From the sequence record PP886230.1: a stretch of 64,000 nucleotides of DNA. The stretch is one strand, 5' to 3'. Numbering within the stretch: position 1 is the first letter of the stretch; every line of letters begins with the position of its first letter. The notes below the pieces were generated by a model. It saw only the letters and a program-made list of their open reading frames with translations, was not told the DNA's origin and ran no database searches. The position numbers and the translations under genes were made by a program. This document shows positions 4,105-49,535 of the stretch, one piece after another.

Positions 4105-4368
4105 ATGAATATTCAAGATAGATTACAATTACTGTACACACTTGAACAGGCTGCTTATGATCTTGTTCGAAAAATCTCAGATGAACTACCTAAAGGAACT
4201 AAAGTTCGTGTACGTGAGATGAATTATTTTTCTGGAGTAATTGAAGAACAAGTACTAACAGTGAATAAAGTAACATACTATGAATCTGAGTTGTCTATTC
4301 AGTGTGAATCTGATGATGGATTAATATCATATTATGGAACTGATGTAGATATAGAGGTAATAAAATGA
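4105..4368 (+). CDS. Hypothetical protein
   Basis: Start reassigned to ATG 4105, just after the upstream stop. Confidence 0.6.
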   Translation: MNIQDRLQLLYTLEQAAYDLVRKISDELPKGTKVRVREMNYFSGVIEEQVLTVNKVTYYESELSIQCESDDGLISYYGTDVDIEVIK

Positions 4369-5507
4369 CCCTTTTGCAAATATATGAAGATTTAATGCAC
4401 TTATGTAATACAAACGATGCATTCTTTTATGTGGATCATAAAAGTCCTGCTGGTGGCACGTATCGTGTATTCAGTTATCGTCTAGCATCATACACTGATT
4501 TCATGCAACCAAATGCGTTGGAAACCCGTGGCTCTATGTGGGAAATTGATGAAGAAGGTGAAATGATACGTTGTGCAGCACGTACAATGAAAAAGTTCTT
4601 CAATGCTTACGAGAATCCTGCTACAATGTTCCCTGCTAACACCACATGCGATGACATTGCGGTAGTGATGCCTAAGTTGGATGGTTCGATTATCAGTACT
4701 TACCGTGATAATGATGGTGAGATTCGTTGTAAATCACATACTGCATTGTATTCTGACCATGCGATTAATAGTACTCGACTTATTAACGAGAACCAGAATT
4801 TGTATCAGTACATCGACGAAGCGGAACGTTTAGGTTACACAGTTAATATGGAGTATACAAGCCCAGAGTACCGAATTGTATTACCATATCAGGTAGAACA
4901 ACTGTTTGTACTGAACGTTCGTCATCGTGTGAGTGGTGAGTTGCTATGTGGTAAAGCACTACGTGATAAGTTTCCATGTCTTGCACAGTACAGTACTAAT
5001 ATGACTGGAAAAGATATTCATCACACTTTTCCGGTACGAAATACCTTCCGTGAAAGCGTGGAGGAAGTTCATAAAATGCTTGATATTGAGGGTTTTGTGT
5101 GCATCCTAAATAATGGGACAATGTGTAAAATAAAGACTGACTGGTACAGTTCATTACATCTTACAAAAGATAGTATTATTATTGATTCTCATTTATATGA
5201 AGCAGTATTAAATGGTTCAAGTGATGATTTAAAACAATTGTTCAGTACTGATGAATATGCTATGCAAAAGATATTAAGAATGGAACAATTGGTATTTTCG
5301 TGCTATAATGCATTACAAGATGAAGTAGAAAGCTTCGTCAAGGAACACAAGCACTTGGAGCGAAAGGAATTCGCAATGAAGGTTCAGGAGTGTTTAACTA
5401 ATGAACTGAATCGTCAGGGCTTGGCCTTTGCAATGTATAACAATAAGAAAGTTGATTACAAAGAGACTCTTATAAAATACATGAAAATTGTACTAAAGGA
5501 TTTTTAG
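4365..5507 (+). CDS. rnlA: RNA ligase 1 (T4 gp63/RnlA-like)
   Basis: Nucleotidyltransferase motif I PKLDGS; FSYRLASYTDF...ALETRG; KFFN; EGFV and KIKTDWY motifs; 380 aa. Confidence 0.93.
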   Translation: MTLLQIYEDLMHLCNTNDAFFYVDHKSPAGGTYRVFSYRLASYTDFMQPNALETRGSMWEIDEEGEMIRCAARTMKKFFNAYENPATMFPANTTCDDIAVVMPKLDGSIISTYRDNDGEIRCKSHTALYSDHAINSTRLINENQNLYQYIDEAERLGYTVNMEYTSPEYRIVLPYQVEQLFVLNVRHRVSGELLCGKALRDKFPCLAQYSTNMTGKDIHHTFPVRNTFRESVEEVHKMLDIEGFVCILNNGTMCKIKTDWYSSLHLTKDSIIIDSHLYEAVLNGSSDDLKQLFSTDEYAMQKILRMEQLVFSCYNALQDEVESFVKEHKHLERKEFAMKVQECLTNELNRQGLAFAMYNNKKVDYKETLIKYMKIVLKDF

Positions 5508-6603: not shown

Positions 6604-7536
6604 ATGCCAACTATTACACTAACAGTTGGATTACCTGGGTGTGGTAAAACCACATGGGCAGTTCAAGAAATTAAAAATGCCAAATCCAAGACTATCAACA
6701 TCAACCGTGATGATATTCGTGAATCTATGGCTGGGTCACATGATGCTTACAAATTCAACGATGCTAATGAGCAGTACGTAACTAATTTACAGTTCAGTGC
6801 AGCAAATTCAGCAGCAGAGAATGGTTGGAACATCATCATATCCGATACAAACCTTAAACAACATTTCCGTAATCTCTGGAAAGTATGGGCTAAAGATAAT
6901 GGTTATGATTACAAAGAAAAGAACTTCTATGATGATTTTGTACCTAATGAAGACCGTGGTGCAGATGTTCATGAATTCTTTAAGATTAAAGAGTTCGTAA
7001 AACTTTGTAAGAAATATAACCTCCAGCGTGAGCGTTCAGTACAAGATGATATCATTGACACAATGGCAGATACGTACTATTATAGTAAGGCATTGCACAT
7101 TGGTTACTATGGTAATTCACGAGAAGCTGCTATTATCGTTGATATTGACGGTACTCTTGCTCATAAATGGGGTCGTAATCCTTACGATGAAAGTACTGTT
7201 CTTCAGGATACACCTGATGAAGAAGTTATTTTGTCTATTATCGCTGAAGCAGTTTTTCATAAACGCAAGATTATCGTCATGAGTGGGCGTACTGAAGGGT
7301 GTCGTGCTGATACCGAACAGTGGCTTAAGAATTGGGGTGTTCCTTACGATGCATTGTTTATGCGAGATATCGATGATAAACGTCCTGATGATGTTGTAAA
7401 ATTCGACCTGTACATGAAAAATGTGGTTGATCATTACGATGTTAAAAAGGTATATGATGACCGAGCACAAGTCGTATTCATGTGGCGTAAGCTACTTGGC
7501 TTGAAAGTTTTTCAAGTTGCAGAAGGAAATTTCTAA
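6604..7536 (+). CDS. pseT: Polynucleotide 5'-kinase/3'-phosphatase (T4 PseT-like)
   Basis: N-terminal P-loop GLPGCGKT and INRDDIRE; HAD motif DIDGT; YDDRAQVVFMWR; 310 aa. Confidence 0.95.
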   Translation: MPTITLTVGLPGCGKTTWAVQEIKNAKSKTININRDDIRESMAGSHDAYKFNDANEQYVTNLQFSAANSAAENGWNIIISDTNLKQHFRNLWKVWAKDNGYDYKEKNFYDDFVPNEDRGADVHEFFKIKEFVKLCKKYNLQRERSVQDDIIDTMADTYYYSKALHIGYYGNSREAAIIVDIDGTLAHKWGRNPYDESTVLQDTPDEEVILSIIAEAVFHKRKIIVMSGRTEGCRADTEQWLKNWGVPYDALFMRDIDDKRPDDVVKFDLYMKNVVDHYDVKKVYDDRAQVVFMWRKLLGLKVFQVAEGNF

Positions 7537-13835: not shown

Positions 13836-15254
13836 ATGAGCATTTTAGCAATTCTAGAAAGCATTAAAAATACTAGCAGTACACTAGGCAAAAAAGCTAT
13901 TCTTGAACAAAATAAAGATAATGTAACTTTACAAAAAGTACTGAAATATACTCTAGACCCTTCTATCGTTAGTGGCTATAAGAAGCTCCCTGCCGCTGAT
14001 GACGTATATCAACATATGACGTTAGATGAAGCAATTGATAAGCTAGAATGCATTTACAAGCGTGATGTGACAGGAAATGCGGGGCGTGATTTCATTGCTT
14101 CAGTACTGGGTTCAGTATCAGAAGATGATCAAGAAGTTCTCCGTAAAATGCTTACTAAAAACCTTGATTGTGGTATTCAAGAAAAGAACTGCAATGATGT
14201 ATTTGGTAAAGGCTTTATTAAAGACGAACCATATATGCGTTGTTCTTTGATTGACAAAAAGACTGCAAAGAACATTAACTTCAAAGATTATGGTTATGCT
14301 ATATCAGAAGTGAAAATGGATGGTCAGTACTTGAACCACGTTGTCATTAATGGTTCATTAACTTCTACATCCCGTAATGGTAAACTATACGACTTCCTGG
14401 GTTGTCGAGATGGTGAGATGGCAGGTCTTGCTCACATCATCCAAAGTAAAGATGAACGTTTTAGTAGTGGTGTAGTCTTTATGGGTGAAGGTGTAGTACT
14501 GGACAATGATGGGGAAACAATTCTCCCACGCACTACTGGCAACGGTATAATTCAGAAAGCTGGAAAAGATAGCATCAGTCAGAATGAAGCAATGCGTACT
14601 GTATTCGTTCTATGGGATGTTGTTCCATATGATGCATTTTGTGAAGGTGTATGGGATGTAAAACGTAAAGAACGTCGCGAGATCTTAGTAGATGCAATTA
14701 ACGAACTCAATAGTGATTTTGTTCGTATGGTTGGATTCCGTAAAGTTCTAAACATCAAAGAAGCATTTGAGTACAATAGTGAACTAATGAACGAAGGTGA
14801 AGAGGGTTCAGTACTGAAATGTGAAGATGGTATCTGGAAATCTCACACTTCTCCGAAGCAGTTGAAAATGAAATTGAAAATGCAACTAGACTTGCGTATT
14901 GTTGGTTTCAATGAAGGTGAAGGTAAACGTAAAGGAAGCCTAGGTTCTTTACAACTGGAAAGTGCTTGTGGTTCATTGAAAGTTAATGTGGGTACTGGTA
15001 TCAAAGAGAAAGATGCTGAATGGACATTTAAAACCATTTGGGAAAGAATGCAAGAACTTATTGGTAAAGTGGTTACAGTTGAGTGTAATGACATTGTATT
15101 CGAGAAGCGTACTGGTGAGCCATCACTGTTCTTACCAGTGTTTATTGAATTTAGATTTGACAAAAACACTTGTGACGACTATACTCGTATTTTAGAAATT
15201 CGTGATAGTGCTGTTGAGGTGTTCTCAAACAGTATCATTGAATCACTTGGCTAA
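13836..15254 (+). CDS. lig: ATP-dependent DNA ligase (T4 gp30-like)
   Basis: N-terminal STLGKKAILE DNA-binding domain; motif I EVKMDG; EGSVLK; C-terminal OB fold with SLFLPVFIEFRFDK. Confidence 0.95.
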   Translation: MSILAILESIKNTSSTLGKKAILEQNKDNVTLQKVLKYTLDPSIVSGYKKLPAADDVYQHMTLDEAIDKLECIYKRDVTGNAGRDFIASVLGSVSEDDQEVLRKMLTKNLDCGIQEKNCNDVFGKGFIKDEPYMRCSLIDKKTAKNINFKDYGYAISEVKMDGQYLNHVVINGSLTSTSRNGKLYDFLGCRDGEMAGLAHIIQSKDERFSSGVVFMGEGVVLDNDGETILPRTTGNGIIQKAGKDSISQNEAMRTVFVLWDVVPYDAFCEGVWDVKRKERREILVDAINELNSDFVRMVGFRKVLNIKEAFEYNSELMNEGEEGSVLKCEDGIWKSHTSPKQLKMKLKMQLDLRIVGFNEGEGKRKGSLGSLQLESACGSLKVNVGTGIKEKDAEWTFKTIWERMQELIGKVVTVECNDIVFEKRTGEPSLFLPVFIEFRFDKNTCDDYTRILEIRDSAVEVFSNSIIESLG

Positions 15255-40492: not shown

Positions 40493-40533
40493 AAAGCTCG
40501 TCTATTGACGGGCTTTTCTTTTATGTGTATAAT
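40493..40533 (+). promoter_or_regulatory. Terminator hairpin fused with a sigma70 promoter
   Basis: AAAGCTCGTC-TATT-GACGGGCTTT plus T-run; TTGACG (40505)-17-TATAAT (40528). Confidence 0.75.
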
Positions 40534-42158: not shown

Positions 42159-42560
42159 ATGACTACAGTTGATGATATCTACAGCACTATACGCAATATG
42201 AGTACAGATAGAAAAGTATTTGGTGATAAAGAAAAATCTAAGTGTTATGGTATTGATTCTTTTGATATAATTTCTTATGAGTACAACACGAGTGGAAATA
42301 GTTCACTGAATATCGTCTGCCCTCGTGACCCAGAAAATAATTTTATGTATGTTGAAATTAATAATGATGGAATATTTTTTACAAAAGTTTTTAAAGGTGG
42401 AATTAATTACGAACCAATTGAATGTATGAATGAAGAAACTTTCTTTCAAGAAGATACAATTATCAATTTAGGTTTTAGTTTTGATGATTATAAAACATTA
42501 GAACATGACTTTAATCGTTATTATAACGGTTTCTTAAAGGAGTTAACAATTTATCTATGA
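42159..42560 (+). CDS. Hypothetical protein (EHFQ-motif family)
   Basis: MNEETFFQEDTIINLG. Confidence 0.6.
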   Translation: MTTVDDIYSTIRNMSTDRKVFGDKEKSKCYGIDSFDIISYEYNTSGNSSLNIVCPRDPENNFMYVEINNDGIFFTKVFKGGINYEPIECMNEETFFQEDTIINLGFSFDDYKTLEHDFNRYYNGFLKELTIYL

Positions 42561-43789
42561 ATAACCAATATGTTGAACAAACAATAGTGAAACACTTGGC
42601 TGGGTCACAAGCCTACGGAACCAGTACACCTGAAAGTGATACTGATTATCGTGGTATTTTTCTTGCTAATAAAGAATTTATTCTTACGCCATTCTATAAG
42701 GTCAAAGAAGTAGCTGATAAAAATGAAGAAGATACTAAATTCTATGAGTTAAATCAGTATTTAAAATTATACACTGAAGCCAACCCTAATATATTGGAAT
42801 CACTATGGGTCGATCCAGAACACATTGTAGAAAGTACTGAGATTTATGACTATCTTCGTTCATTTAACCAAAAACTTCTTAGTTCCAAGATTGCATTTTC
42901 ATACACTGGATATGCATATAATCAGATTAAGCGTATGACAAATCATCACGGTTGGATGGATAAAGAGCGTATTGCTGAAAAACGATTAAATGAGATTTTA
43001 GAAGAACACCCTGTCGATGAGGTTCTTGCGTGGATGTATGATTCATTCCCACAGTATCTTGTTGAACGTTTAGATACATCCAACTTACATCCATTTAATG
43101 CTAAAAAGATTGATTTTGAAAAATATATGCGTGATACGTCATTGCAGTTAGTTTCGAAAAATCCATTAAAGCAATATCATTTTGTAAGATTAGTGCATAA
43201 CTACACTACTGAAAAAATTCTTGATCGTGATTTCAATTTATTGAATTTTAATAATGGTTATGAACTAATTCATTACGGAGAAAACATTTTTGCGATTATT
43301 AAAAATCCGAATGAAAGCACTATCAACGGTGATGGATCATTGCGTTATTTTTCTAAAGAGCGTAGTACTGAAGAGTTGAAAACCAAACCAGAACTAATTG
43401 TCAAATTTAACGAAAAAGAATATCAGGAAAATAGTGAGAATAGGAAAAGTTATCATAAATGGAAAGAAAATCGTAATGCCAAACGTGCTATTTTAGAATC
43501 ACAACACGGATACGATTGTAAACATGCTATGCACACAATCCGACTTTTGAATAGTGCAGAAGAAGCATTACAAAGTGGAATTATTCAAGTTAAACGACCA
43601 GATGCACAAATGTTGATGGATATTCGTAATGGTAAATGGAAGTATGAAGAAGTATTAGAATATTTCGATGATAAAGTACAATACATTCGTGATGTTCTAT
43701 ATAAGAAATCAGTACTTCCTAAAAAACCAAACATCAAGTTAGCATCAAAAATTATCATTGATATTAGAGAAATGCAATGGTATAAGTAA
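42557..43789 (+). CDS. Pol-beta-superfamily nucleotidyltransferase (RlaP/YcgL-like)
   Basis: GSQAYGTSTPESDTDYRG (GS...DxD); ANPNILESLW; GYDCKHAMHTIRLL. Confidence 0.8.
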   Translation: MNNQYVEQTIVKHLAGSQAYGTSTPESDTDYRGIFLANKEFILTPFYKVKEVADKNEEDTKFYELNQYLKLYTEANPNILESLWVDPEHIVESTEIYDYLRSFNQKLLSSKIAFSYTGYAYNQIKRMTNHHGWMDKERIAEKRLNEILEEHPVDEVLAWMYDSFPQYLVERLDTSNLHPFNAKKIDFEKYMRDTSLQLVSKNPLKQYHFVRLVHNYTTEKILDRDFNLLNFNNGYELIHYGENIFAIIKNPNESTINGDGSLRYFSKERSTEELKTKPELIVKFNEKEYQENSENRKSYHKWKENRNAKRAILESQHGYDCKHAMHTIRLLNSAEEALQSGIIQVKRPDAQMLMDIRNGKWKYEEVLEYFDDKVQYIRDVLYKKSVLPKKPNIKLASKIIIDIREMQWYK

Positions 43790-43866: not shown

Positions 43867-44494
43867 ATGGCACAACAAATTTTCACAGATATCCACACTA
43901 CCGGAGTTATTAAATTTCAAAATAATTTTTCAGGTGCAACTGGTGTAGACATTAAAAATGATGGTTTTAACATTGTCAGTACTCGGATCTATTGATGGTG
44001 AAGATAGTTCTCTTAGTGATTCTGTGATTGCATCATTCGGAACTAATAAAAACAGTTCTTTTATTATATCTGGATGGACTGGAATGACTGATTCTGAAAA
44101 TAATGTTAAGATAAAAGCTAAAGCTACTAACGAGAATCATGAAACAGAATGGGTAACATTATATGATAGTGCAAGTAATAAGTTATATAATGTATTAAGT
44201 TCTAATAATATTTTAATTAATCCACTGTCGGGCAATGCTGTTTTTAATATTAATTTATCTGATAGAAATACTACTATTTCGATTGGTGCGGCTCCTACTG
44301 AAGTTTATTCAATTACCATCATATTAACACAACAAACAGGTTCAAACCTAGTTAATTGGGGTTCTAATGTTAAATGGTCATATAACAGACCAGTTGTTCT
44401 TTCTTATGAAATTGGTGAAAAAGATATTATTTCATTAGAAACATATGATAAAGGAGTTACATGGTACGGTGCATTAATTAGAGCAGGAGTATGA
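43867..44494 (+). pseudogene. Tail-associated protein split by an apparent +1 frameshift near 43960-43995
   Basis: ATG 43867 has an AAGGA SD but stops at 43995; the +1 frame continues to ...VNWGSNVKW...DIISLETYDKGVTWYG, a tail-fibre-type C-terminal motif. Confidence 0.5.
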
Positions 44495-44495
44495 T

Positions 44496-47285
44496 ATGTT
44501 AAACAATAATATTGATAATATTGTACAACTTCTTTATGGGCATCACAAATTTATTGAAAGAAATACTGGTGATACAATAGACCCAACAGTACAACATTAT
44601 GTGGTGAATAATCAGGGTGTTTTGGCGAACAACCGTCATTTTATTAACTATTCTGCAATGGAAGGTCAACCAAACGGTGACGGGACAACAGAAGGTCAAA
44701 GTCTATTAATTTTAGGATACATTTATGCGTATCTGGCAACAAATGATCCAATGTTTTTAGATAAAGCCAAATGGTACTGGGATGCATATCATCAGTACTT
44801 TTATGCTGGACGTGAATTACCAGATCCACCTACACCACTACAATGTAACTGGATAGTTAATGCCAAAGAACCTATATTGGCTAACTGGCCTTTAGCTGAT
44901 GATGGATGGCCTACACATGGTGGTTTCAAGGGTGTAGAATTTACATTTACAAATGGACAATGTAAAATACCACATGGTGCACCTTATTATGGTCAGTTCT
45001 TGGATAAAGTAACATTTGCATTCAAAGGTGCTTTAGCATGGAACCAAATAAATGCGTCAGTAAAAGCATTATTACCAGATGGTAGTGTTGATTGGGATAC
45101 ACCAGGTGAACAATATGATGTTGACTGGATTATCGATTTCATGGGTAGAAAAATCGACTGGGATGGTAATATTTTAGCAGAAGGTTTTGACGAATCTGAA
45201 AAAGGAACTGTTCAATTAAAGAATACAACAATTAATGGTGTATATAAATTAAATTTTGCAAATCGTCAACCAGTAGAATATGGTGGTGTGATAATTCAAC
45301 GAAATGAAATGCAACACAACCGCCCACTTCATGTTCCAATTGATTTGGAATTTGCGGATAACGCATCAGATGCAGAATTGTGGTTTAGTGATGCTTCTTA
45401 TTTGTTATATAAAATAACAAAAGAAAGAAAACATTATTTGGGTTGGAAATGTTCACTACTAACGTGTTATGCTTATGGTGATATTGACTCCAGAGATAAA
45501 TTTTTCAGACAAAGTACAATTGTAACCACACCATTCACTGATGGTATTTCCTATGAATATTTTTATCCAAGTGATGCTATTGCTAAGTTTGGTAGAAATT
45601 CTCTAGGATATATTACTATCAGGCAAGACCAAAGTGCACAAAGTACAATGGAACAACAAGCTATTTGGTTCAGGGTCAATGCTGATTCTAAATTACTTGT
45701 AGACTATGGTGGTGTATGTGATGATGGTAAGCCGTTATCATTTAAACCAGTACTTGAATTGTCAAAAACAAAAAATGACCATGATGTTGTTCGTTATCGT
45801 TGTGGCTTACCGGAAAGTAAAGACCAAAATATCACACATTCATTAACACCTTTAAGTGCATTTGTTAGAGAAAAGAAAGCAGATGGTTCCCCTTATATAA
45901 TTGCTGATAGTAGAATTGTTGTTCCTTATGGTGCAGCTACGTCCGAAATGATATATAGTACTGATATATTAGTTACACGCCGCGATACCATTAATCAGTT
46001 AGTTTGTGGTGAAGATGATGGTGCTGTTATTGGATTTTGGCTATTAGCAACAAATAAGTCTGAAGTTAAATCTTTTACCTATCGTTCATATGAAGATGAT
46101 TACAATATAAGAATTGTAGATGATAATGGTTGGAGATGGTGGTGGATGATTCCTGCAACACACGGGGAATGGACTACAATCACACTAAGTCCCGATACAT
46201 TACGTTTATCTGGGTATCAGCCAAATCATCCAAGTTCTGACCCAAGACCAGATGCACCAGTTTATAGTGAACTAGAAGATATTACTATTTTACCTGATAC
46301 AACCCCAGTAGATGGTGTTGCTGCAATAATTGATTGGTATTGTATTAATGACATTCCAGAATTATACACGGATGCTGACGGTGATGACTATACTATGACA
46401 TTTTCAATAACAATTGCAGGTGAATCACCATATACTGCACAGTTAGGGGATTGTGTAATCAAAGATTATTTGTTAAACTCATTGCATTACACACCAGGAA
46501 CAATACCATTTTCTAACATCACTGACCCGTATGCGAACCAGTATTCAGGATGGCGTGGTTTACCGTATCCAGGTTATCAATATCCTGTGATATATTGTTT
46601 TAAAGACCAGCCAGTAGATAACACACGCTTAGGAAACATGTTAAGCTTTATGAAAGATTCCCAAACATGGTTTACTCAACAATTCGGTACTGTTGGTCCG
46701 TGTGCACAAGCATATGTTTGGAACCGCTGGGATAACTTAAAATATGGTGAACCAGATACATTTACTATGCTACATTGGGGTGATCAAGCATGGAGTGGGT
46801 ATGAACCACGTGCGTTCTTTGGGGCTGCCAGAGCATGGCAAGAACTCGCAGAGAGAGGAATTGAACCACCAGCAGATCTTGTTGAATTTTGTGAGAATTG
46901 GATTCACTTTTTAATTCAATTTCAAAAAGATAATGATGGTCGTTCACCAACAATCTTCAATAAAGATGGCACAGTTGAAGGTCCAGATTGGGACTTTACA
47001 GGTCATATGTGTGGGTTGTGGTTAGCTGGGGCTTGTGCTGCTGGATTGGCTGGATGTAAAATAGAAGGTCTAACAACACTCGCTGATAACTTAGTTCTCG
47101 AACTTCAAAAGAATTATGTTATTGTAAATCCAGGTTCACCAATGAATGGTTCATGGAGTCCAGCAGTTAGAGAAGGTACTGATAATGGTATGTTTTTTGG
47201 TTTCTGGGCAGGTGAGATTATGCGTGGATTGGGATTATACTCAATGTACCGCTTAAACACACCAAATCGTTTCCGTGATTTATAA
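44496..47285 (+). CDS. Large virion-associated protein with a GH8-like (alpha/alpha)6 glycosidase domain
   Basis: DGTTEGQSLL (cf. BcsZ TTSEGQSY) and DNASDAELW (cf. NSASDGDVW); Trp-rich beta inserts; GGAG SD. Confidence 0.6.
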   Translation: MLNNNIDNIVQLLYGHHKFIERNTGDTIDPTVQHYVVNNQGVLANNRHFINYSAMEGQPNGDGTTEGQSLLILGYIYAYLATNDPMFLDKAKWYWDAYHQYFYAGRELPDPPTPLQCNWIVNAKEPILANWPLADDGWPTHGGFKGVEFTFTNGQCKIPHGAPYYGQFLDKVTFAFKGALAWNQINASVKALLPDGSVDWDTPGEQYDVDWIIDFMGRKIDWDGNILAEGFDESEKGTVQLKNTTINGVYKLNFANRQPVEYGGVIIQRNEMQHNRPLHVPIDLEFADNASDAELWFSDASYLLYKITKERKHYLGWKCSLLTCYAYGDIDSRDKFFRQSTIVTTPFTDGISYEYFYPSDAIAKFGRNSLGYITIRQDQSAQSTMEQQAIWFRVNADSKLLVDYGGVCDDGKPLSFKPVLELSKTKNDHDVVRYRCGLPESKDQNITHSLTPLSAFVREKKADGSPYIIADSRIVVPYGAATSEMIYSTDILVTRRDTINQLVCGEDDGAVIGFWLLATNKSEVKSFTYRSYEDDYNIRIVDDNGWRWWWMIPATHGEWTTITLSPDTLRLSGYQPNHPSSDPRPDAPVYSELEDITILPDTTPVDGVAAIIDWYCINDIPELYTDADGDDYTMTFSITIAGESPYTAQLGDCVIKDYLLNSLHYTPGTIPFSNITDPYANQYSGWRGLPYPGYQYPVIYCFKDQPVDNTRLGNMLSFMKDSQTWFTQQFGTVGPCAQAYVWNRWDNLKYGEPDTFTMLHWGDQAWSGYEPRAFFGAARAWQELAERGIEPPADLVEFCENWIHFLIQFQKDNDGRSPTIFNKDGTVEGPDWDFTGHMCGLWLAGACAAGLAGCKIEGLTTLADNLVLELQKNYVIVNPGSPMNGSWSPAVREGTDNGMFFGFWAGEIMRGLGLYSMYRLNTPNRFRDL

Positions 47286-47286
47286 C

Positions 47287-47315
47287 TTGACATAGAAAAA
47301 GTAATTATGTATAAT
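47287..47315 (+). promoter_or_regulatory. Consensus sigma70 promoter
   Basis: TTGACA-17-TATAAT exact. Confidence 0.85.
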
Positions 47316-47316
47316 C

Positions 47317-47346
47317 AGAGAACTTCATATGGAGTTCTCTTTTTTT
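47317..47346 (+). terminator. Rho-independent terminator overlapping that promoter's start site
   Basis: AGAGAACTTC-ATAT-GGAGTTCTCT-T6. Confidence 0.8.
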
Positions 47347-47359
47347 ATAAGGTGATAAA

Positions 47360-47779
47360 ATGTTAAATGAACGTATTAAAAATGCACTACATGTATTGAA
47401 CCAAGAAGTAAATTCTATTGATAAAAGTACTGACCGTTATAAAGTAATGCATGAAATCAAACAAGAATTGGAATCTATTAATAAGGGAGAATGGTGGTAT
47501 CTTCAGCCCGAATATCAAACTCGTGAATTAAACGATGTTGAAAAAGAAATTGTCAAATTCATCACTACTCGTTACTGTGATACATCAGAGAATGAGGTAT
47601 CAGCGAACTTCAATCTTACTAAATTGGAAGTCGAAGAAAAATTCAATTTTGATTGGCTTGATTGGATTGAAATGGTCATGGAACTAGAAGAAAAATTCAA
47701 TGTTGAAGTTGATGAAAAGTTCGAGAATAATGAAACGAAGCTGTATGAACTAGTAGAACATATTCAAAAAATGTTGTAA
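47360..47779 (+). CDS. Acyl-carrier-protein-like protein lacking the phosphopantetheine Ser
   Basis: C-terminal ~80 aa align with AcpP; DWLDWIEMVMELEEKFNVEV vs [20 protein letters not shown]. Confidence 0.75.
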   Translation: MLNERIKNALHVLNQEVNSIDKSTDRYKVMHEIKQELESINKGEWWYLQPEYQTRELNDVEKEIVKFITTRYCDTSENEVSANFNLTKLEVEEKFNFDWLDWIEMVMELEEKFNVEVDEKFENNETKLYELVEHIQKML

Positions 47780-47798
47780 AACTATACAATTGTATACT

Positions 47799-47805
47799 CT
47801 AAATA
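47799..47805 (+). promoter_or_regulatory. Late-promoter-like CTAAATA
   Basis: Lies ~28 nt before the spanin operon. Confidence 0.55.
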
Positions 47806-47832: not shown

Positions 47833-48207
47833 ATGAGTATGTTAGAAATAATTGTTTCAAAAATTCTGATTCCATTTTGGAAACCAATTTCTTTTGTATT
47901 ATTGATTGGCGGTTCAGCTTATGCTGGTTGGGAAGCTAATACTTATTACAGTGGCTATCAACAAAGCATAGAGCAACAAATAGCTAAAAAAGTTGATACC
48001 GCCTTGGATAAAATGCAACAAGAAAATGCAAAAAATTACCTTGAAACGAAAAAAATCATGGAAGATAATGCTAAAGTTATTGAAACAAAGGTTCCTTTTA
48101 TTGTAGAACGTGAAGTTTATAAGAATGTATGTTTAGATGAAGATGGTGTAAAAGTACTGAATGAACTAAAACAAAATTCTCAAGCTGCGAGGAATAAATT
48201 CAAATGA
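47833..48207 (+). CDS. Inner-membrane spanin (Rz-like)
   Basis: N-terminal TM, coiled coil and C-terminal Cys (YKNVCLD); coupled to a lipoprotein gene. Confidence 0.7.
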   Translation: MSMLEIIVSKILIPFWKPISFVLLIGGSAYAGWEANTYYSGYQQSIEQQIAKKVDTALDKMQQENAKNYLETKKIMEDNAKVIETKVPFIVEREVYKNVCLDEDGVKVLNELKQNSQAARNKFK

Positions 48208-48512
48208 AAAAATTATTAGTTCCGTTTATTTCTTTTTTAATTATAAGTGGATGTGCCGAACAAGTAAAACTACAATCCCCTGCACCAATTAAACAAGAAA
48301 TTCTGTTAGAAAGATGTGATGATGATACACCTCTACCACAAAAAATTATGATTGACAAAAATGGTTTTAAAGGTTATGATGGTGCAGAAATTCTTAAAGT
48401 ACTTACTCGTTGGGATGCAGTCTACAATGAATGTGCTTTAAAACACGACGCATTGATTAAAACTATTCGTGATTTACAAGGTAAAGATATTAAAATCAAT
48501 ATCAAGGAATAA
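48204..48512 (+). CDS. Outer-membrane spanin lipoprotein (Rz1-like)
   Basis: Lipobox ISGC; LERCDDDTPLP; YNECALKHDALI; ATGA overlap with the i-spanin. Confidence 0.7.
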   Translation: MKKLLVPFISFLIISGCAEQVKLQSPAPIKQEILLERCDDDTPLPQKIMIDKNGFKGYDGAEILKVLTRWDAVYNECALKHDALIKTIRDLQGKDIKINIKE

Positions 48513-48513
48513 A

Positions 48514-49125
48514 ATGAACAAATATCATGTTTACTATACGACAAAATTATCACTTCTTGAAGAATTAAATCAACGAAGTACTAAGATGAAACGCTACACT
48601 TTAAATGGTATTACTTTTCGATATTTCCCACAAAAAGTTCTTACTTTTGTTAAGAATCCAAAATGCGTGGCATGTGGGATTGAAGCTACTGAAGTACGCA
48701 TTGAACGTTCATTATGTTCTGATCCAGTATATGGTAAACCACATTTAAATGTATATGCTGTATGTGGTCTTTATGAAGTTTTAATGACAGTTGACCATAA
48801 TCATCTGGCATCTAAGGGTGGACCTGATTTAGAGTCAAACTTTAATACTATGTGCTCCAGATGTAATCAACTACGTTCGAATAAAACTGAAACAGTTGAT
48901 GAGTTTCTTGAGAAAGTTAAAGGTCGTAATCTTCTCCAAGAACATATGAATAATTTCTTTAATGTACAAAAAAAGAAAAATAACATTGACAAGTCGAAAC
49001 TACTAGAAGAACGTAGGTTACGTCAAGAATTATGGGAAACTGATCATCTATGGCATGTTCGAGAGTTTGGTCGTCATATGAAAGCTTTGAAAAAAGAACA
49101 GAAGAAATTGAATAAACATGATTGA
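48514..49125 (+). CDS. HNH endonuclease-domain protein
   Basis: CVACG; MTVDH...SKGG...NFNTMCSRCN. Confidence 0.75.
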   Translation: MNKYHVYYTTKLSLLEELNQRSTKMKRYTLNGITFRYFPQKVLTFVKNPKCVACGIEATEVRIERSLCSDPVYGKPHLNVYAVCGLYEVLMTVDHNHLASKGGPDLESNFNTMCSRCNQLRSNKTETVDEFLEKVKGRNLLQEHMNNFFNVQKKKNNIDKSKLLEERRLRQELWETDHLWHVREFGRHMKALKKEQKKLNKHD

Positions 49126-49137
49126 TATGATATTATA

Positions 49138-49167
49138 GGGACTTGAGTATTCAAGTCCTTTTTTTTT
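49138..49167 (+). terminator. Rho-independent terminator
   Basis: GGACTTGA-GTAT-TCAAGTCC-T9. Confidence 0.85.
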
Positions 49168-49178
49168 GGAGAAAATAA

Positions 49179-49535
49179 ATGAAATCTAAAATCTTTTTAC
49201 CACAATTAATGTGGCATCTAGCAGAGTTAGATGAAAATGATGAATATACGGACTATGGTGCATGGGATGACAGTACTGAAACTTTTAAACCAGATGTAAA
49301 ATATAAAATCATCTGCAATGAAAGCAAAGGACACAAAAGGTGGACTGAAGAATTTGATCTCGTATTTCTTGACATGAGCACAAATAAGTTTTATCATTGT
49401 ACTTATGAACGAGGTTTAACAGAAGATAGACCAGTACAACCATTCAGTACTGAAACTGATGGTGTTAAGTGCAATGAAGTTTCTGTTACCAGAGAAGAAA
49501 TTATCACTTATCGAACTTTGTGGAAATATTTGTAA
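49179..49535 (+). CDS. Hypothetical protein
   Basis: GGAG SD. Confidence 0.6.
   Translation: MKSKIFLPQLMWHLAELDENDEYTDYGAWDDSTETFKPDVKYKIICNESKGHKRWTEEFDLVFLDMSTNKFYHCTYERGLTEDRPVQPFSTETDGVKCNEVSVTREEIITYRTLWKYL

Follow-up and report, generated by a model that had tools for sequence, protein, structure and literature searches.

The question raised by this locus is what an acyl carrier protein (ACP) is for when the serine that accepts its prosthetic group is gone. The locus lies in a 64,000-nt stretch of sequence record PP886230.1 (here called the window, by which we mean the whole stretch that was analyzed), which belongs to an Escherichia coli jumbo phage of the PBECO4/121Q group in the genus Asteriusvirus. 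The window is 100% identical to the jumbo coliphage vB_EcoM_E9.1 over the part compared and matches the PBECO4/121Q/phAPEC6 group at 98.7 to 99.6%. The only ACP-like open reading frame (ORF) within it encodes a strongly acidic protein (net charge of approximately -15) in which Trp99 stands at the position of the phosphopantetheine-accepting Ser36 of E. coli AcpP (Table 1). We find that this is a two-part protein, in which a type II ACP-fold domain follows a conserved helical hairpin at the N terminus, and we put the probability that it is a binding protein with an ACP fold, and not a carrier, at about 0.9. That it would act more specifically as an apo-ACP-like, nonmodifiable decoy of a host ACP client is our favored explanation, argued by analogy with apo-ACP and held tentatively, at somewhat less than even odds.

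Chance does not account for the similarity to ACP. A family profile found E. coli-type AcpP chains in the PDB with an E value of 8e-8, placing the family motif F-D-x-L-D-W on A-D-S-L-D-T of AcpP and Trp99 on Ser36, and phage ACP families among the PHROG profiles matched at E values of 1e-7 and 3e-6. The match to phrog_18343 itself (E value of 2.6e-61) aligned residues 2 to 139 with profile positions 1 to 138 of 138. The AlphaFold2 (AF2) model, with a predicted local distance difference test score (pLDDT) of 85.8, has a four-helix domain after two N-terminal helices, and residues 55 to 139 of it superpose in Foldseek on solved ACPs with template modeling (TM) scores of 0.72 to 0.76, normalized by ACP; with the ACP models in SwissProt, the score reached up to 0.81. 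All 50 of the 50 matches listed by the VIA fold search were carrier proteins (Z scores of 6.3 to 8.8), and the look-alikes by feature or structure in the ESM Atlas were no more than unspecific ACP clusters and unnamed bacterial proteins (130 to 170 aa), from which no lead emerged. None of the curated ACP cutoffs was reached, with 25.2 bits against 70.45 for TIGR00517 (E value of 1e-5), 12.1 bits against 20.8 for PF00550 (PP-binding), and 17.9 bits against 32 for PF14573, and the protein is therefore a divergent homologue and not an AcpP equivalog.

A first-pass annotation of this locus, made from the letters alone, had described an ACP mimic with its prosthetic-group serine replaced by tryptophan, and most of its structural claims hold. 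HMMER gave the same alignments of helices I and II to AcpP, the fold search confirmed the ACP fold, the tryptophan codon is exactly where it had been placed (positions 47651 to 47665 read GAT TGG CTT GAT TGG), and the helical extension of ~58 aa corresponds to the two-helix segment of residues 1 to 56. With tryptophan in place of the acceptor serine, 4'-phosphopantetheine is not carried at the canonical site, so the description of the protein as nonmodifiable is borne out for that site. The N-terminal hairpin had no structural match in Foldseek searches of the PDB, SwissProt, and BFVD or in the wide VIA search and no Pfam match; a LYR-motif identity for this part was considered and rejected, as there was no Pfam LYR-type signal. 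Full-length fold matches in Foldseek and VIA were to phage homologues only, with a poorly defined domain orientation.

The pattern of conservation indicates which part of the ACP has been kept. Counted over 17 representative lineages, conservation is highest in helix II, with a mean pairwise identity of 52% versus 15 to 33% elsewhere in the protein, and in the window, 10 of its 16 residues are identical to AcpP residues 35 to 50. D98 and D101, equivalent to D35 and D38 of AcpP, are invariant (17/17); position 104, equivalent to E41, is E or D in all 17 lineages (E104 in the window); E110, equivalent to E47, is kept in 15; and the window protein also has E111, the counterpart of E48. In E. coli, AcpS contacts ACP through ion pairs with D35, E41, and E47/E48 (bioRxiv 10.1101/2025.01.28.635281), and the binding of IscS to ACP requires D35 and D38 (PMC13343975). 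The partner-recognition surface that the first-pass annotation saw in helix II has thus been retained, and since these acidic docking residues are fixed while the prosthetic-group site varies, it is the docking surface of ACP that has been kept and the arm that is not needed. The second most conserved segment is the N-terminal hairpin, in which Y27 is invariant (17/17), position 23 is S or T in all 17 lineages, and R26 is found in 14; the S/T-x-x-R-Y motif of the family appears in the window protein as S23, R26, and Y27.

Family searches covering 5.8 billion and 1.8 billion proteins plus GenBank phages returned a small family limited to RaK2-like jumbo phages. Its 44 aligned members, all intact and full length, have one of seven residues (W, S, T, D, E, N, or R) at the acceptor position. 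A maximum-likelihood tree made without the acceptor column, and with GAP32, XbC2, BF, and Munch left out, requires six state changes at this position. The CBB outgroup, P0015, and the Asteriusvirus lineages at the base (A4, ph0011, and P0008-10) have Ser, and D-S-L-D is also present in the outgroup genera outside the tree (GAP32, XbC2, BF, and Munch). Judging from this distribution, Ser is ancestral and has been replaced independently at least five times (by W, T, D, E, and N/R). The tryptophan type is nested among the Ser-bearing Asteriusviruses, with support for its monophyly of 79/71, and falls into two subclades that are ~29% apart. Trp99 was read directly in three phage genomes (the window, phAPEC6, and vB_Ec-M-J) and was found in six protein clusters covering both subclades, while approximately 30 phage records were assigned to the two W types by identity; an exact-pattern scan of IMG/VR with the W-type helix II DNA returned phage 121Q alone. 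It had been suggested that homologues mostly retaining Ser would point to a private mutation or an error. The substitution is clearly not private, being present in two subclades and three genomes, but Ser is indeed retained in the sister Asteriusviruses and in all outgroup genera. Because relatives have S, T, D, E, N, or R at the position and Ser is ancestral, we regard it as free to vary and not as selected to be Trp.

Loss of the serine was not followed by loss of purifying selection. Between the window and vB_Ec-M-J, both of the W type, the ratio of nonsynonymous to synonymous substitutions (dN/dS) was 0.205 at a dS of 0.82, so purifying selection persisted after the serine was lost, and the ratio was 0.12 to 0.40 in all comparisons made. 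Trp102, at the position of Thr39 in AcpP, is invariant in the Asteriusvirus/Alcyoneusvirus-side clade, where Ser was repeatedly lost, whereas the outgroup genera that kept Ser have Y, L, M, E, or V there. Aromatic residues recur at position 99 or 100 beside Trp102, as D-W-L-D-W, D-T-W-D-W, and D-S-W-D-W.

We propose that the conserved task of the family would be not to carry acyl groups but to dock through helix II, in the way that ACP does on the basic patches of client enzymes. Made from host sigma70 promoters ahead of the late genes, the phage protein would act as a competitor that fills the ACP-binding site of a host client, with the N-terminal hairpin adding a second contact, and host lipid and envelope synthesis would be damped or redirected during infection. 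The best candidate clients would be the glycerol-3-phosphate acyltransferase PlsB and AcpS, which accept apo-ACP or are inhibited by it. PlsB is a candidate because apo-ACP potently inhibits glycerol-3-phosphate acyltransferase and arrests growth (PMC3896788), and AcpS is one because the phage protein lacks the acceptor but has kept every AcpS contact residue; by analogy with apo-ACP, such clients are plausible targets. SpoT, which the first-pass annotation had listed as a target, fails to bind ACP in its apo form (PMC3896788), and IscS likewise fails to bind ACP S36T (PMC13343975), which makes poor candidates of the arm-dependent clients. The surroundings of the gene also support a decoy: no ACP-using enzyme is nearby, the linked nucleotidyltransferase is of the RlaP type, and Pfam searches of ten neighboring ORFs found only RlaP and HNH domains and no adenylating enzyme, acyltransferase, or phosphopantetheinyl transferase. 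A wider version, which we consider possible but rather unlikely, is that this virus-encoded ACP mimic jams or reroutes a host process that uses ACP, either phospholipid or lipid A synthesis, through PlsB, LpxA/LpxD, or AcpS, or an ACP-requiring defense, with the recurrent and independent losses of Ser marking a shift from carrier to decoy. In a variant of it, the hairpin (R26/Y27) and the W99/W102 patch would together form a self-contained unit resembling a LYR-ACP pair.

Several observations weigh against a decoy. The protein is only ~25% identical to AcpP overall, in addition to scoring below all the curated cutoffs; the decoy model as such gives no role to the conserved N-terminal hairpin; host AcpS may modify the alleles that bear Ser, and these could act differently; and liquid chromatography-tandem mass spectrometry (LC-MS/MS) of virion preparations detected an Eneladusvirus orthologue (PMC7760394). 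Furthermore, the ACP-like gene is the most divergent of its block in every comparison, which is odd for a decoy of highly conserved host enzymes. Compared to the window, the ACP-like protein is 65% identical in ph0011 (neighboring proteins, 85 to 98%), 37% in Turkey5 (53 to 87%), and 32% in RaK2 (44 to 74%). Two causes fit this fast divergence, either relaxed constraint outside helix II once an acyl pocket has become superfluous or coevolution with a variable partner, and the first of these could account for it under the decoy explanation. The ph0011 genome is a mosaic in this region, with upstream proteins at 97 to 98%, downstream proteins at 85 to 95%, and the ACP-like protein at 65% (dS of 0.51), which points, on sequence grounds, to the replacement of the allele by recombination at this gene alone. 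Since ph0011 is of the S type and its neighboring genes are so similar, S- and W-type alleles circulate among very similar E. coli phages.

Nearly as likely as the decoy, and possible on present evidence, is that the protein works inside the phage program, as an adaptor or subunit whose ACP fold is a module for a phage-encoded partner, much as mitochondrial ACP (mACP) works with LYR-motif proteins and the mACP of Plasmodium, with no prosthetic group, with Isd11. Here, the hairpin (Y27 and R26) could be part of the interface or could pair with the W99/W102 patch of its own molecule. A core gene with a fixed position in five jumbo phage lineages would suit such a role, as would the high conservation of the hairpin and the detection of an Eneladusvirus orthologue in virions, and rapid coevolution with a phage partner would explain why this gene diverges most in its block. 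The gene overlaps the stop of the upstream ORF in most genera, which suggests coupled translation, and there is a precedent for an aromatic residue that replaces the serine and adds to partner binding (PMC8547962). However, the overlapping ORFs of RaK2, CBB, and BF have no homologue in the window, which leaves the gene without a constant neighbor as its partner, and the orthologue was not found in phAPEC6 virions: gp313 was absent from the virion proteome, while its neighbor gp314 was present. The missing LYR-type signal in the N-terminal part also speaks against this explanation, and so do the predicted models of homologues, which differ in the relative orientation of the two parts (root mean square deviation of 15 to 19 Å over the full length).

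It is improbable that Trp99 itself is the key adaptive change and imitates an acyl or pantetheine cargo, as the first-pass annotation had supposed. Tryptophan is fixed in two subclades, the change from TCA to TGG takes two nucleotide substitutions (the acceptor codons of relatives are TCA for Ser, ACA for Thr, and AAC for Asn), the aromatic residues next to the invariant Trp102 recur, and Phe113 of Plasmodium offers a precedent (PMC8547962). Against this, equally conserved relatives have T, D, E, N, R, or S at the position, W monophyly is supported at just 79/71, and the S- and W-type alleles are found in E. coli phages that are otherwise nearly identical. In addition, a side chain at the N terminus of helix II cannot reach the acyl pocket that is served by an arm of ~18 Å. 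The supposition is thus weakened by the variability among seven residues and by an ancestral Ser that is kept in sister Asteriusviruses.

Even less probable is that the gene is a decaying or neutral remnant of a former phage carrier protein, with the loss of Ser equaling the loss of function. It is the fastest-diverging gene of the block, and the score with the ACP profile TIGR00517 drops from 47 to 49 bits in CBB and BF to 25 bits in the window protein, as might be expected of a remnant. The low dN/dS values, the invariance of D98, D101, and Y27, and the dedicated, conserved promoter all speak against decay, and the gene is intact not only in the aligned sequences but also in roughly 60 isolate records across the five lineages, where it is full length by tblastn coverage.

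The decoy explanation places expression of the gene ahead of the late genes, and the region upstream bears on this. The perfect sigma70 consensus noted in the first-pass annotation is present and is the sole perfect match in the window, but at least one such match occurred in 22 of 100 shuffles, and the perfect match alone is therefore not significant. Conservation is more telling: four diverged lineages (ph0011, A4, Turkey5, and phAPEC6) share an unchanged -35 hexamer, whereas the -10 hexamer differs among them (TATAAT, TATAGT, or TAAACT). Sigma70-like sites with at most one mismatch are enriched sixfold, with 12 in the window versus ~2 expected, and 11 lie on the coding strand. Examples are at 15157, 15761, 16740, 20754, 40505, 48352, 49369, and 53221; those at 48352 and 49369 fall within ORFs, and the near-consensus site at 40505 to 40533 is directly 5' of the ORF run leading to the nucleotidyltransferase.

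A hairpin with a T run follows the promoter at once and probably serves as a terminator for the upstream tail-fiber transcript. The predicted start, at ~47322 (~7 nt past the -10 hexamer), lies inside the 5' arm of the hairpin, so that the new transcript would keep a 5-bp stem only; the full hairpin folds at -13 kcal/mol and RNA from 47322 folds at -4.5 kcal/mol. With the start site in this place, the hairpin should be able to stop tail-fiber transcripts and yet let the new transcript pass. The hairpin is kept in the four lineages, with differences only in the loop and at the top of the stem, and the cassette of promoter plus hairpin is conserved in Asteriusviruses with the tail-fiber insertion. 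A second cassette of stop, promoter, and hairpin with the same layout is present between the HNH gene and the ORF at 49179, which suggests that the overlap of a terminator with a restart promoter recurs in this phage. No promoter of its own precedes the gene in vB_Ec-M-J, RaK2, CBB, BF, or Munch, and the earlier claim of early expression, which had been drawn from the consensus promoter alone, is weakened accordingly. The CBB paper describes an ATAAATA late motif and RpoD-like early promoters, and by analogy with the latter, early expression of the ACP-like gene is plausible. The phAPEC6 and PA5oct papers do not mention an ACP, and the phAPEC6 paper contains nothing on promoters or the timing of expression.

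TABLE 1 Positions of the ACP-like gene, its parts, and neighboring features in the window
Feature	Position	Strand	Remarks
Predicted sigma70 consensus promoter, TTGACA-17-TATAAT	47287-47315	+	Starts 2 nt past the stop of the 929-aa tail-fiber gene
10-bp hairpin and T7 run, intrinsic-terminator-like	47317-47347	+	Begins one base past the -10 hexamer
Ribosome-binding site, AAGGTGA	47349-47355	+	4 nt 5' of ATG; direct sequence reading
Coding sequence, ACP-like core protein of RaK2-like jumbo phages (PHROG 18343)	47360-47779	+	139 aa; isoelectric point (pI) of 4.6
N-terminal extension, residues 1-56	47360-47527	+	Predicted (AF2) helices 4-18 and 23-41
ACP-fold four-helix domain, residues 57-139	47528-47776	+	Profile, AF2 model, Foldseek, VIA
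Helix II (recognition helix), residues 98-113	47651-47698	+	AcpP equivalents by profile alignment
TGG, Trp99, at AcpP Ser36 (phosphopantetheine-accepting) position	47654-47656	+	Sequence and alignment
TGG, Trp102, at AcpP Thr39 position	47663-47665	+	Sequence and alignment
CTAAATA/TTAAATA motif	47799-47805		Between ACP-like gene and spanins
i-spanin/o-spanin pair	47833-48512		Directly 3' of ACP-like gene
HNH endonuclease gene	48514-49125		Directly 3' of o-spanin
Second stop-promoter-hairpin cassette	49108-49167		TTGAAT-17-TATTAT with TG extension, then 10-bp hairpin (49137-49160) and T run
Tail-fiber pair	43958-47285		178 aa and 929 aa; no Pfam match for the latter
RlaP-type nucleotidyltransferase	42557-43789		410 aa
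RNA ligase	4365-5507		As annotated
Polynucleotide kinase	6604-7536		As annotated

The gene lies directly 5' of an i-spanin/o-spanin pair, and the same order is found in Asteriusvirus, Alcyoneusvirus, Mimasvirus, Eneladusvirus, and Munch-like phages and in two metagenomic contigs, which makes it, by this distribution, a core gene of RaK2-like jumbo phages. Upstream, it overlaps an ORF in RaK2, CBB, BF, and Munch and abuts the nucleotidyltransferase in vB_Ec-M-J; in these five phages, the upstream ORF is the last of the run equivalent to the one leading to the nucleotidyltransferase in the window. We give very little credence to the idea that the protein is a lysis-associated factor that works with the adjacent spanins, for example in lipoprotein maturation, since lipoprotein acylation draws on phospholipid donors and not on acyl-ACP. 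The gene precedes the spanin genes in every lineage, and this adjacency has been noted before (PMC7760394), but the entire block from the nucleotidyltransferase to a Dps-like gene is syntenic, and the adjacency is therefore not specific. The gene is also parted from the spanins by a TAAATA motif resembling a T4-type late promoter (TATAAATA), which all five phage lineages have 25 to 45 nt before the ATG of the i-spanin gene. Three of the lineages (Mimasvirus, Eneladusvirus, and Munch) have a GC-rich hairpin and T run ahead of the motif, and in the Munch record this hairpin is an annotated terminator. Together, the motif and the terminator-like hairpin argue against a transcription unit common with the lysis genes.

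That the protein is a true carrier with its modification elsewhere, or an antirestriction protein or acidic DNA mimic built on an ACP fold, is scarcely credible: S/T23 is conserved in the N-terminal loop and the low pI and net charge would suit a DNA mimic, but phosphopantetheinyl transferases act at the N terminus of helix II and the context of residue 23 differs, the acidity is inherited from ACP, and the protein matched none of the defense or antidefense models of PADLOC.

Other genes around the locus vary between phages. The tail-fiber pair is an insertion or deletion among Asteriusviruses, present in the window, A4, and Turkey5 and absent in vB_Ec-M-J; ph0011 also lacks it and has an apparent short remnant of its 3' end beside the kept promoter cassette. 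The HNH endonuclease gene, found after the o-spanin gene in Asteriusvirus, RaK2, and Munch-like phages and absent at that position in CBB, GAP32, BF, and XbC2, is probably a mobile insertion. The nucleotidyltransferase, linked to the block in all lineages, is of a Pol beta family type that belongs to an RNA repair pathway, and annotations at other places in the window include an RNA ligase and a polynucleotide kinase.

ACP is among the most connected proteins of E. coli, and we know of no viral protein that exploits its docking surface. The literature searched contained no description of a recurrent loss of the acceptor serine in a viral ACP family or of its function, and a comparative review of jumbo phages does not mention ACP. 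What was already known is that ACPs free of phosphopantetheine exist in apicomplexan mitochondria (PMC8547962) and that phage "ACPs" have been annotated, as GenBank does for the family member in Sharanji and phAPEC6. The W-type orthologues in OR545507.1, MK817115.1, PP777464.1, and OQ718158.1 are named "acpP acyl carrier protein," "acyl carrier protein," or "D-alanyl carrier protein 1," and because these alleles lack the acceptor serine, such names are misleading; the labels "acyl carrier protein," "acpP," and "D-alanyl carrier protein" are wrong for any Ser-less allele. The family also amounts to a natural experiment, in which close phages differ at one site (Ser, Trp, Thr, Asp, Glu, Asn, or Arg) while the recognition helix is otherwise fixed. 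This variation at the prosthetic site makes it testable which functions of ACP need the protein surface alone. If the decoy explanation is true, the protein would show which ACP client merits shutdown during infection and would provide a compact scaffold for an inhibitor.

Compared to known systems, the protein resembles E. coli AcpP, a type II ACP, in its four-helix fold, its strong acidity, and its helix II, where the identical residues include the equivalents of D35, L37, D38, E41, E47, E48, and F50. It differs from AcpP in the tryptophan at the acceptor position, in the additional hairpin of 56 aa, in its low overall identity, and in that no fatty acid or polyketide enzymes are linked to the phage gene. 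The apo and S36T forms of E. coli ACP present the ACP surface without the arm, as the phage protein does, and are the functional model for a decoy, but they are laboratory or transient host forms and not a dedicated viral gene, and their failure to bind IscS (S36T; PMC13343975) or SpoT (apo-ACP; PMC3896788) implies that some clients, but not all, could be targets. The mACP of Plasmodium falciparum works independently of phosphopantetheine, with Ser replaced by Phe, and binds Isd11-Nfs1 while keeping the acidic helix II contacts (PMC8547962). Like the phage protein, it has an ACP fold in which an aromatic residue has replaced the acceptor serine and which is retained under selection (dN/dS of 0.2 in the phage). 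Unlike the phage protein, it is eukaryotic and organellar, has an independent origin and a known partner, and lacks the N-terminal hairpin, and its position is a fixed aromatic, whereas that in the phage family varies among seven residues. The closest comparison is with the true homologues that bear Ser, namely, CBB gp163, GAP32_159, Serratia phage BF gp158, XbC2_157, Munch_181, A4_505, and the ph0011 protein. These share with the window protein the length, the hairpin with S/T-x-x-R-Y, and the place 5' of the spanins. They differ in keeping D-S-L-D and, in CBB and BF, in their higher ACP profile scores, and judging from the kept motif, they may be phosphopantetheinylated. Those from the outgroup genera lack Trp102, whereas A4 and ph0011 carry it together with the serine.

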